From: Trichosphaerium sp. ATCC 40318
Lineage: Eukaryota; Protista; Tubulinea
NCBI GenBank assembly: GCA_038496445.1
Contig: JALMLS010000304.1
Span: forward strand, 496,001-560,000
Direction: 5' to 3'
Length of the DNA stretch: 64,000 bases
The position numbers were made by a program, and so were the translations under genes. Shown one piece after another: positions 24,409-61,386 of this stretch; positions within the stretch are counted from its first letter, which is position 1; each line of letters starts with the position of its first letter. The notes beneath the pieces are model-generated. The model searched no databases. It was not told the DNA's origin and saw only the letters and a list, made by a program, of their open reading frames with translations.

Positions 24409-26171
24409 ATGGCTGCAAGTAAGAAGACTTTTTTCGAAAACCCGTTTAAACGCGTACGTTAACTTCATCATACGCTGTTAAACACCTCAAGGGTGTATCG
24501 GAAGGGTATACGTGCCCGTACACAGCTGATGATTTAATAAAAAGAGTACAAAGCGTTGTGGCTGACATTGAGGGAAAAGAAGACGACTTACAAAAGCAAG
24601 GGTACTCCACTTCCGTTTTAGTTTATTGATTAACAGAATATTAGAGGTACCGCTATTTATCATGGTGCGCTCTTGATTTTATTAACTGCGCCTCACAAGA
24701 TATGCAGGTATAGGAGGTATTGCATATATGTACTGGCGCCTACATCATATTGGTATAAAGACACTGGGAGAGGTTAAAACAATCCAAAGAGCTAGACATT
24801 GGTTGAGAATTGCAAAGAAATGTGTTGACAATATTGACAAGAAGCACGTGGTCATTGTATTAAAAATAACTGACTGTCGACTAGGCAGCGATCTTTTATG
24901 GCAAGTTACCACGGCGTTGTAGCTCTTGCTGCTGTAGTTGCACATGATAGCAATAACAAGGAGAAGAGGTAAAAAATAGTGGCTACGTGATGCTGTATAA
25001 ACTTTTTTGGTAGTCTGTTTGTGTTAGAGGAGTGCAGATCGACTAAATGTAAGGCGAAGAATTCTTCAGAAATAATGTATGGCACTGCAGGTAAAATTTT
25101 AGGTGAGTAATAGCCCTTTATTACTAATTGTACACGTACAGGTGAGCTGCTTTGTCTTCTCTTCTTAGAACAGAATTTACCTTCATCATATTTTGATGAG
25201 ATTGGATGGCATATACGCGATTATATGAAGTCTTTGTGGAATAAATTATTCGATAAAGGAATGGCCAGTGGCAAGGAATTGTAACAAAAACAATCACCAC
25301 AACAGTATGTGTAACGGAACACTAGGTCTATTTCTATCGATCGTAAACGTGTTCTTGGATATACTTGGTATTCTCAAATGTATCTTGGTGCTGCTCATGG
25401 AACTGCAGGTGCGGTAAATATCGAAAGCTTTTGTTAATACTGAGTACATAAGGTATTCTATACACTTTGATGTTGTTCAAGGAGTTTATAAAAAGACGTC
25501 ATAAAAAAGTTATCTCTCGAACACTTAAATGGCTTTGTACTGTTGCTAAAACCCAAGATCAAAACTGGCCAACTACTGGTTATGAGGGTACATCATATAT
25601 GTAAGAGTATATCTAATATACTACCATAGATAGGCATAAAAAATACACATCAGTTCAGTGGTGTCACGGCGCACCTGGATTTATTTATACTCTCACAAAA
25701 GCAGCTGAGGTAAGGAATTTATTTATAGTTTCGCGTTTCTCAGTTGTTAGGTTTTGTCTGACCCTCAGTGGCTCGAACAAGCAAAAGCTTCTGGGGAATT
25801 GATATGGGAGAAAGGTTTACTTTGTACTTCAATGTCGCTATGTCATGGTATTGCAGGCAATACGTAAGTTACTTAAAGTTCAAAAATTTGTAATACTCTT
25901 AGATACTCTTTGTTGAACCTTTGGAGAGCCACTGGAGATGATAAGTACCTTGTAATGGCAAAGCAATTTTGTTCGTTTAGTCAACAAGATGAGTTGATGG
26001 CGTCGATGAGAACACCAGATAGTCAATACGCTCTCTTTGAAGGCACAAACCATGATTACACTTTTTTTTAAATTGATGTTACCAGGCAAAGCGGGTGTGG
26101 CAGTATTCTATGCTGACATGATTAAACCAGAACAAGCCAGATTTCCAGCTTTTGAGGAAGAGAGTAATTGA
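24409..26171 (+). CDS. LanC-like protein (LANCL family)
   Basis: YLGAAHGTAGI, VQWCHGAPG, SLCHGIAGN, SLFEGKAG, RFPAFE. Confidence 0.92.
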
Positions 26172-26714
26172 TGGACTATGTGGTAAAGTTAGCAGAAAGC
26201 ACTATTGCCAAAAGGTGGAACATATTAAGGCTACTTGGCGTGTTGATATTGCCGTTTATAAATAGCATTGTTGGCTTTGTGTATTTCGTTTTTTGGTGCT
26301 AAATAGCCTCAAGTACAAAAAAGATACAAGTACTTGTTGCACTGTAGTCTTGTTACAATGGGCGCTTCAAGAGCAAGATACTATGGCATGTCGATGGTTT
26401 TATTGGGTGTACTCAATGACTCAAAATGAATGGGTAATAGTTAGCATTCTACCTCTATAAAAGCAACGCAATAATAACACGTGATTTCTTTAGAACGTGC
26501 AGCATATTGTCGCAAATCTTTTGAGTCAAGATGTCGCAGCGTTTAAAAAAGAAAAGAACTAGTATTGCTAGCTAGCAAAACAAACCAAACTGGTAGCAGA
26601 ACTACGTGGTAAAAAGTGTTAACTTTTCTCAATACTGGTTTTAGCGACCAAACTCGCTAGACTTAGATGCTCAAAAACGGCCAATAGATGAAGTACTTTT
26701 TAGCACCCAAGAGT

Positions 26715-58130: not shown

Positions 58131-58787
58131 GACAGTTCAAAAAAAGTTAAAACTGGCCTTAAGTAACACAGCATTCTAAGCAAATCTTAGTTATTAACTT
58201 CCATGTAGCAATGCCTCCAGAGGTGTTGTACCCATTACCACGCCTGTTCCTTCACCTTTGAGACAGTTGCAATCTTGCGATGTTGTGAAATTAATAAAAA
58301 CTAACAACTCTACAAAAAGCACTTTATTTTTTACATGTCTTTTTGAAAAGAATCACGTTCCGTTAGATGCGTGTACATTAGGGAATACCTTTGGAGCAAT
58401 TATCTCAATGACGAACGCACCAAGTAAGTCAAATCTAACTGAGGTTAGCACAAAATTGTTAGGTTGCACAGAATAGTACATTCCAACGAACATGTCTACG
58501 GCAGAGAGTTCACCAAGCAAGTATTGCCCTCAGGCCAAAGCCTTCTATAGTACTGGCCACTGGTAGATGCCCATTTTTTTGAATACTTCTCAACAAGGCT
58601 TGATTTGACTGCTTTGATTCCGTCTACCTCATATGGCAAAAATCGCCAACATTTGCAGGCTAACAAAACACTGACAAATCACTGTTGATGCATTCTATGT
58701 AACTTGGATTGATGCATTGATCTCCCAATATTGTTTTCACAGAAAACGACAGCGTATCTTCAAAATAGCTAATTTATTTGAGTACAC

Positions 58788-59553
58788 CTAAGCATCAATC
58801 CATTGCTTGATAGGCGCTAGAGAAATAACAGCATTGTACATCTTGCTGAGACGAGGTACAGGTTTGAGGTCGAGAGAATCAGGTACGGTCAAAGACACAT
58901 CTCTTATCATTGACGCGACCAGAACATCGGCGAATGAAACATCCTTGCCTGCATAACAGTTAACAACACTGAACAAGAACGAATAATATTGTTCCTGAGA
59001 AGTAATCACCCTCAGTTTGACCCAAGATAGTATCGAAAGCTTTCAGTTGAGTTTTTTGATACTCAGCAAACTTTTTCTTATCTCCACCTGCCAATACAAC
59101 AGGTACCCAAGCATCACGGTAAGAAACGTACGCAGACGCGGCTCTATCAGTGTGATAGTCCTTAATGTCATCAACGCCGTATTTACCCAGTTTTTTTGCC
59201 AAGTATCTAATCATTGGTACGTGCTCGCACATGTTAAGACCTGGTTACTTGGTTAGGTGTATACAAACGAGCAATCCCCTTACCGTTTAGGTGCAAGATT
59301 GGGACACCACCAAAAGGATTTGCTCCGCTGCTAATAATCTCTTCTTTTTTAGAGCCCCAAGCGCCTGGGAAGTCAATAATCTCTTCAGTAAACTTGATAC
59401 CGTTTAATAACATGTAGAATCTAAACAGTGTTGTTAGCTGATTGTGTAGTTGTAGATAGCATACCTGACTGGACCACCGCGTCCGCCTAGTTTCCCCAGT
59501 TGAATGTAAGTGAGTTTAGGAGTACATCCGATTTTATCGTTTGCTGTTGTCAT
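58788..59553 (-). CDS. Glutathione S-transferase
   Basis: GRGGPVRF, NPFGGVPIL, IRYLAKKLG, YFSG.DVSFAD, IKQWI. Confidence 0.88.
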
Positions 59554-60093
59554 TGTTGTTGTAGTTTTTGATTTTGATTGTTTAATGACCCACAAAGATA
59601 GTCATTCGATTCTCCATTTAGAAATCATTCCGCGGTAAACCATTATTGTGTACTAACACGTAATACGAATAATCATGGTATGGTAAGCACTATAGTTATT
59701 ATTTTAGTTTGGGTTGGTGGTATTTGGATTCTCCTCGGGTCGCTTTCCTAATTTAGAAGTTGACCCTCGTGATTTTTCAAAAATGGGTACGCACCCATTA
59801 CGTGTAATCTTACGTGTAACAAGTTGCCATATGTTGCTCAACAAAGCCATTAATGCATTAAAAGGAATATATATGACGCTGCTTAGTTTGTTGTGATTGT
59901 TGGGTTGTATCTTTTTCTTCTATTCTTGCAAGTTTACTGGCTAAACCGTCACCTGATTCTCGAATCTCGTTACCTTTGACACCACCGTAATTCGCTACGG
60001 TAGGACTATTTCAATTGTCTTCACAGCAAGCTCGCCTTAATTAGCTAGAATAAGTACGAATTTGTCACATATTGTCGTGTAAACAGCATTATT

Positions 60094-61386
60094 ATGGCCG
60101 ACGTCACTAAAAATGAGCGCACCTTTGGTGACAGAGCTAAATCCTTTGCCTCCGATGTGTTAATGGGCGGTGTAAGCGCTGCGACGAGTAAAACACTTGT
60201 AGCGCCGATTGAACGCGTAAAGCTACTTCTACAGACACGTCCGGGGCAATATAAAGGTATTAGAGACTGTGTATCCAAAACATATCACAAGGACGGTTTT
60301 TGGCAGTTCTGGCGCGGAAACGGGACTAACGTTGGACGTTACTTCCCTACACAAGCGTTAAATTTTGGATTCAAAGATATCTATCGCGGTATTGCTTACC
60401 AAGGCAAAGATCCCAGCGAATTTGGATACTATGAACTGGTAAGCGAACATGACACTACAATTTTCATCAAACTGTTCCCAACACCCAAGTTGTAGTCTCA
60501 TCCTTGTTTCTACGCTTAAAAACACTTTGCAGGCTGCTCGGAATATGGCTGTGGGAGGTATGGCTGGATTTACGTCTGCGTGCTGTTGTTACCCTCTGGA
60601 TCTCGCCAGAACAAGACTTGCAGCAGATACTGGTACGTGTCCACGTGTTTTACCTCACGACCAAGAGAGCAAACCACGTACAAATTAGTTGTAAGGTTCT
60701 CACTTTTTACACTTATAAACTTTCTACTTTTGTAGAAATTTCGCCAACCTTTTGCCAAAACGTAAAAGTATCTTAGGCACAGTAAAACAATTCCAAGGCT
60801 TCTTTGATGTACTCCGAAAAACTGGTCAAGAAGGCGGTAAGTAAAACGCATGCTCTAAAGAACGTGCAATGTTTGCCCTTTAGAGTACATGCTAATAATG
60901 CTCAAAAGGGTTTCGAGCATACTATAGAGGCTTTGGTATTTCTATTCTAGGCATTGTTCCTTATAGGGCATTGTACTTTGGAGGTTACGATACTATAAAG
61001 TCAATAGTCATTACAGAACCAGAGCACAATAATTTTTGGCGCAAATGGGCTATCAGTCAGACAACTACTGTTATAGCACAATATGTTGTCTATCCTGTGG
61101 ATACAATACGAAGGAACCAAATGACTCATGGACATAAACTAGAGTTTAGTTCAAGGTTCTTCAGCATCATAGACATTTAGCATAAACTAATGTGATGTAG
61201 TTACCGTACAATGAAAACGCTAGTAGCACGGAAAGGTATGATGGGGTTGTATCAAGGAGGTACGGGATGTTACTTTAAGTTAAATGCTGATGTATTTGTT
61301 AAGCGTTGGCAAACACCTTTAGAGCAACTGGTGGAGCATTGACAATTGTGTTTTATGATGAGTTAAAACAGTTTACTGGTCTCTAA
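60094..61386 (+). CDS. ADP/ATP carrier-like mitochondrial carrier with a non-canonical signature
   Basis: [60 protein letters not shown]; RRRMMM replaced by RRNQMT. Confidence 0.88.

Follow-up and report, generated by a model that had tools for sequence, protein, structure and literature searches.

Introns with GA and AG ends are already known as a rarity (PMC7072748). In plants, GA-AG introns make up about 0.01% of introns (PMC10668435), and one of the described cases, intron 12 of the Trema orientalis SYMRK gene, acquired its GA donor from an ancestral GC by a single-base change and is still functional, as proven by complementation (PMC10668435). For human FGFR genes, a canonical site located 6 nt upstream is reportedly required for GA-AG splicing (PMC7072748). 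In Oikopleura dioica and Eurytemora affinis, GA-AG introns are frequent, at about 3% of introns and more than GC-AG introns, and their donors are flanked by an exonic AG upstream and an A at position +3 (PMC7072748).

Here, we analyzed the third intron of a glutathione S-transferase (GST) gene in a 64,000-nt stretch of the Trichosphaerium sp. ATCC 40318 genome (C15:496001-560000), which we refer to as the window and whose own numbering is used for all positions given without a contig or locus name. An initial annotation of this stretch had called the intron a probable GA-AG intron. We found that the intron is real and has GA and AG ends, but a functioning GA-AG intron is not borne out. Intron 3 was ancestrally a U2-type GT-AG intron, its position is conserved, and the T-to-A change at donor position +2 is a derived state in one of seven gene copies. 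The GA-AG ends are therefore neither old nor conserved. The intron would be a further case of this rarity, with an origin that is unusually clear, or else the mark of an ordinary nascent pseudogene.

Like the sporadic GA-AG introns of SYMRK and FGFR, GST intron 3 has a single change at +2, while the rest of the intron is ordinary, unchanged, and conserved in position. It differs from SYMRK in that its ancestral donor was GT and not GC, and in that its splicing is putative, whereas that of the SYMRK intron is complementation-proven. It also differs from FGFR, since the nearest upstream GT in the GST gene is at -15 and not 6 nt upstream. The GST context CAG/GAA (a slash marks the exon-intron border), which lies in a compact genome whose introns are about 46 nt long, resembles the donor context of Oikopleura and Eurytemora. 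In contrast to those species, there is one GA candidate here among roughly 320 to 600 introns, GC-AG introns are commoner, and nothing indicates a lineage-wide GA class.

The GST gene and the borders of intron 3

The minus strand of the window contains a compact gene of four exons and 210 codons that encodes a sigma/nu-like GST. Exon 1 (59465-59553; 89 nt, with the ATG at 59553-59551 and an equal length in five close paralogs) is followed by intron 1 (59421-59464; GTATGC..TAG, 44 nt), exon 2 (59284-59420; 137 nt), intron 2 (59241-59283; GTAAGG..CAG, 43 nt), exon 3 (58995-59240; 246 nt), intron 3 (58949-58994; GAACAA...TTATGCAG, 46 nt, phase 1), and exon 4 (58788-58948; 158 nt plus the TAG at 58790-58788). 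The exon lengths of 89, 137, 246, and 158 nt are conserved in the GST family, and there are no stop codons or frameshifts in any of the four exons of the window copy. The 3' end of exon 3 encodes GDYFS plus the first base of a Gly codon, while exon 4 begins with GC AAG GAT, which encodes (G)KD, and contains the S-x-x-D cap. Upstream of the GST gene, exon 1 of an ADP/ATP-carrier-like gene is found on the plus strand (60094-60495), head to head with the GST gene, whose start codon is about 540 nt away. An Rfam search of the window returned no matches.

Profile and structure comparisons predict that the window gene family encodes cytosolic GSTs that are sigma/nu-like and of the GST_C_3 class. Exon 4 of the window copy alone matches Pfam GST_C_3 (PF14497) with 19.7 bits (E=0.001), and exons 3 and 4, searched separately, have weak matches to solved pi/sigma GSTs. 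The window exons are 64 to 75% identical to P0001, a full-length relative of 212 amino acids that scores 46.2 bits against GST_C_3 (cut-off, 21.6) and also passes GST_C. Residues 11-209 of P0001 align with residues 13-211 of the solved GST 4q5f (E=1e-11), P0001 also aligns with 2on5, and both alignments are free of gaps across the motif …GDYFAGTEVTFADL…, the equivalent of the window exon 3/4 junction.

On the minus strand, exon 3 ends with GAT TAC TTC TCA G at 58995 and is followed by g (58994), a (58993), and acaa. The 3' end of the intron is ttatgcag, with its final AG at 58950-58949, and exon 4 opens with GC AAG GAT GTT at 58948. When the exon 3 frame is extended into the intron, it meets a TAA (58960-58962, minus strand), so that a transcript retaining the intron would encode a product of about 168 amino acids that lacks the last 52 residues, and the exon 4 frame is offset by one base. 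Removal of the intron restores both the frame and the homologous protein, with a GDYFS-G-KDVSFAD junction that is gapless against P0001, and in a tblastn comparison of P0001 with the window, exons 3 and 4 abut with no missing and no extra residues. The initial annotation had placed a 46-nt GA...AG segment at 58949-58994 of the minus strand and had matched the resulting junction, EGDYFSG-KDVSFAD, to a conserved GST motif. Both points hold, since the borders and phase are exact and agree with the paralog sites and with the splicing of transcript L014, and since the solved GSTs and the spliced P0001 run through the junction without gaps.

We also considered other ways of reading the intron. The end of exon 3 and the end of intron 3 have only CAG in common, so the same product could otherwise be made only with GG-CA, AG-GC, CA-TG, or AA-GG ends, and a GT, GC, or AT-AC register was rejected because sliding the borders yields none. 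The nearest upstream in-frame GT is a cryptic site (59008-59009, minus strand; AGG/GTGATT) located 15 nt from the GA donor, which would produce a 61-nt intron at a cost of five codons (DYFSG). This loss of five residues had been pointed out in the initial annotation, and we could confirm it: the residues are conserved, the donor scores at the 6th percentile of local introns, and GTGATT is found in none of 320 local GT introns. Use of the GTCAAA at 59021 would remove 73 nt and nine codons, and two further frame-keeping GT donors are internal and pair with an AAG acceptor at 58944. Every frame-keeping GT would delete or add residues that are conserved, and, judged by the paralogs and the protein, we rejected all alternative in-frame GT and GC sites.

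Seven gene copies and the ancestry of the donor

We searched the 70.3 Mb of the Trichosphaerium genome for copies of the GST gene and compared them in a MAFFT alignment. Six further full-length copies were found, on C153, C238 (two copies), C50, C169, and C141, and all seven copies have an intron at exactly the window intron 3 site, in phase 1. The intron 3 donor is GTACAA in four of the six other copies, GTAGAT in one, and GTTCGT in one, while GAACAA is present in the window copy only. Position +2 of the donor (58993, minus strand; C15:554993) is thus A in the window copy and T in all six paralogs. Across the family, 20 of 21 aligned introns start with GT, as does an additional intron of the C141 copy.

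The C141 copy encodes P0001, and its transcript L014 is a polyA-tailed contig from a JGI transcriptome with 99.4 to 100% identity to the genome in each exon. In L014, the homologous intron is excised exactly at the aligned borders, which gives P0001 the junction …DYFAG/TEVTFAD…. The presence of an intron at the identical aligned site in six paralogs, one of them with a spliced mRNA, argues that intron 3 is not a chance pattern. The conserved site in the paralogs, the exact splicing of L014, and the gapless mapping of P0001 together indicate that intron 3 and its borders are real and ancestral and that the GA is derived.

The GST family includes decaying members. There is an extra GST fragment with a TAA at C238:25341-25493 (L007), and exon 2 of the C50 copy (at about 25600-26400; L005) is 138 nt long in the alignment, which may reflect a frameshift. 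In several copies (loci L003, L004, L005, and L006), intron 2 ends with GAG or AAG instead of YAG, and acceptor position -3 seems, from these alignments, to be loosely read in the Trichosphaerium genome. The L014 contig also has a leader of about 790 nt on the GST mRNA (L014:1-793; C141:~125800-126900) with three GT-AG gaps, of about 38, 44, and 297 nt, on the GST strand. This leader sequence crosses a head-to-head lumazine synthase gene (PF00885) in antisense orientation and could represent either a natural antisense transcript or a long 5' leader that undergoes splicing.

The copy closest to that of the window is its sister on C153. The two copies share a 1.18-kb unit on the minus strand (58638-59819 in the window and C153:132717-133894) that is 96.9% identical. 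The C153 copy was rejected as a haplotig because the similarity ends after 1.18 kb, and the unrelated flanks beyond this unit identify the pair as a dispersed duplicate. Within the gene body, about 1% of positions differ (eight differences), with 5 of 633 nt in the exons, 0 of 87 nt in introns 1 and 2, and 3 of 46 nt in intron 3, while 16 of 266 nt differ in the 5' flank and 13 of 150 nt in the 3' flank. Besides the T/A at 58993, intron 3 differs by a 1-nt indel and a further substitution. The exon 4 differences (window/C153) are T/G at 58941, C/T at 58917, and G/A at 58806. The initial annotation had remarked that GAACAA parallels GTACAA donors, and this turned out to be literal, since C153 has GTACAA at this same donor and the two differ by T to A at +2. 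Comparison with outgroup copies showed that the donor A, the 1-nt deletion, and an E-to-D replacement at 58941 are all derived on the window lineage. Exon 4 differs from its C153 counterpart at 3 of 161 nt, compared to 16 of 196 nt in the adjacent intron 3 and 3' flank, and this lower divergence than in adjoining non-coding DNA would fit continued constraint that is not assignable to the window copy alone.

Splice signals and GA-AG frequency in the sampled genome

A genome sample of about 300 kb (the window, C1:100001-300000, and C153:113000-149379) was used to train models for coding sequence and for donor, branch, and acceptor sites, with 320 confident locally predicted GT introns as the reference set for percentiles. 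The local introns have the donor consensus AG/GTACGT, a yTnAy branch site 11 to 16 nt before the acceptor, a YAG/G acceptor, and a modal length of 44 to 47 nt, so that the 46 nt of intron 3 are of modal size, as previously annotated. The candidate branch site of intron 3, TTAAC (58959-58963, minus strand), has its branch A 12 nt before exon 4 and fits the local yTnAy model, and the CAG/G acceptor, the 46-nt length, and the TTAAC spacing are all usual for Trichosphaerium introns. With +2 ignored, intron 3 has a total signal of 21.6 bits, at the 94th percentile of the 320 local GT introns, while the donor context ranks at the 58th. The sister donor, GTACAA, is a working donor type in this genome, found in 7 of the 320 local introns and in an intron of another gene (encoding P0002, below). 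The intron 3 donor does not have the consensus +5 G and +6 T (ACAA, not ACGT) and therefore has no compensating strength. When a realistic prior of about 8 bits against GA is included, the model no longer favors the GA site over the GT at 59009, the margin between them being 6.7 bits.

GST intron 3 was the top and only credible GA-AG candidate in the 300 kb, among roughly 320 to 600 introns, and the other GA candidates were no better than a GG control. This corresponds to a GA-AG frequency of roughly 0.3% of introns or less in the sampled DNA. GC-AG candidates were clearly commoner, and several of them had GCACGTG donors. In this GC-AG class the same spliceosome tolerates a base other than T at +2, as it would in GST intron 3, but the GC donors have the full ACGT(G) after +2, whereas the GST donor has ACAA. 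A literature search for splice statistics of Trichosphaerium found nothing specific.

A second GA-AG candidate (L033:3539-3575; 37 nt, GAAAGT..TTTCAG) was rejected, since the 903-amino-acid protein P0002 shows that the donor is a GTACAA located 24 nt upstream. The segment is part of a 61-nt GT-AG intron (L033:3515-3575; C1:283515-283575) in a gene for a Chlam_PMP-repeat membrane protein. This case shows that a splice model without a prior against GA over-calls GA, and it is a warning that GA-AG calls from reading frames alone are unsafe in this genome. In a repetitive coding region of C1 (143000-153000; L019-L020), we also observed numerous spurious intron candidates on the strand opposite the coding sequence, with recurring ...GACATCAG/CATCAA... 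units.

Fate of the GA donor in the window copy

The reading we lean toward, at somewhat less than even confidence, is that intron 3 of the window copy may still be spliced as a GA-AG intron. The A at 58993 would then be a real DNA change in a redundant young duplicate, in which T to A at +2 turned GTACAA into GAACAA after the split from the C153 sister. The major (U2-type) spliceosome would still recognize the site by its CAG/G exon end, A at +3, C at +4, TTAAC branch, and YAG/G acceptor, and the intron would be excised at its ancestral borders, probably less efficiently than with GT, to give a full-length GST. This reading is based on the intact remaining signals, the tolerance of GC donors in this genome, and the SYMRK precedent (PMC10668435). 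The finding of GA in only one of seven copies counts against a functional GA-AG intron, since it gives no sign of the donor having survived selection.

Almost as likely, and a substantial possibility in its own right, is that a real T-to-A change disabled the donor of a young duplicate. The intron would be retained, or the weak cryptic GT at 59009 would be used, and the gene would be a nascent pseudogene or a hypomorph, tolerated because six other copies exist. Retention would end translation at the TAA at 58962-58960, giving a protein of about 168 amino acids without helices alpha6 onward, or would lead to mRNA decay, while the cryptic donor would cause an in-frame loss of the conserved DYFSG. 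In most eukaryotes, a T-to-A change at +2 abolishes or cripples splicing, as seen in yeast and in human disease alleles, and mutations at this position are classic null alleles. A defective donor is also consistent with the restriction of GA to one of seven copies while the other 20 aligned family introns are all GT, with the absence of compensating +5 and +6 consensus bases, and with GA-AG introns being at most very rare in the 300 kb. In addition, three of the eight gene-body differences from C153 are inside the 46-nt intron 3, and a fourth is 8 nt downstream.

The searches for gene products bear on the same question. A word search with window exon 3 for transcript or protein products gave no match, one with the 125-amino-acid open frame of the paralog L003 recovered P0001 from the C141 copy only, and no products of the window copy or its five close sisters, spliced or intron-retaining (45 to 218 amino acids), were detected by word search. 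The absence of this close-copy subfamily from the transcript-derived proteins searched is in line with a defective duplicate. The window copy resembles splice-donor null alleles and nascent pseudogenes of duplicated families, in that the change affects a single recent duplicate, its sisters are intact, and further damage has yet to appear; in contrast to splice-donor null alleles, the GT-to-GA change here is a candidate lesion. Against a defective gene, a second lesion was not found: every exon is open and has kept its ancestral length. Exon 4 is also better conserved than neighboring non-coding DNA, although the mutation may be too recent for decay to have set in.

A base-call or polishing error, with T as the true base at 58993 and an ordinary GTACAA..CAG intron, is unlikely but deserves consideration, as one base would suffice, the site is functionally constrained so that real substitutions would be selected against, and about 3 of 1,440 aligned bases differ between L014 and the assembly, so some error or polymorphism exists. 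However, A is found at +2 in no paralog, so mis-mapped paralog reads cannot be its source. There are also two more differences from C153 in intron 3 and another just downstream of it, as true divergence predicts, and paralog divergence in this part of the gene is about 3%, compared to a mismatch of about 0.2% against RNA. It is highly improbable that the segment is removed by a different mechanism, either as a minor (U12-type) intron or after its GU has been restored by RNA editing. Editing has been raised as a theoretical route for GA-AG sites (PMC7072748), with nothing specific to the window GST, but A-to-I editing would be read as G-like and not as U. The donor GAACAATA is unlike the U12 donor RTATCCTT, the branch is TTAAC in GTTGTTAACTG and not the U12-type TCCTTAAC, and the paralogs use ordinary U2-type signals with GT at the corresponding position.

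If intron 3 is still spliced, it would represent a cleanly dated birth of a GA-AG intron, with one substitution, a known ancestor, and a sister that keeps GT, and it would suggest relaxed recognition of +2 in a protist already rich in GC-AG introns. If it is not spliced, the window copy would be an ordinary fresh pseudogene, and in either case only one locus is involved and the event is of a known type. For genome annotation, gene callers limited to GT and GC donors would truncate or mis-splice the window GST.

A broader reading, possible but doubtful, is that the major spliceosome of this amoeba is loose at donor +2, so that a few per cent of introns have GC and an occasional one GA. A GT-to-GA change would in that case be close to neutral, and point mutation would repeatedly create GA-AG introns that persist. 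If so, the C15 (GA) and C153 (GT) copies would provide a natural near-isogenic pair for the in vivo cost of a GA donor. Variant copies of U1 snRNA, if present, would be relevant to the GC-AG and GA-AG donors found here. We observed about 10 U1 snRNA loci, four of which are above the Rfam gathering score (C122:19165-19328, C144:124528-124691 and 125555-125718, and C100:91164-91327) and six of which are weaker and below it (on C289, C22, C13 [three loci], and C39).
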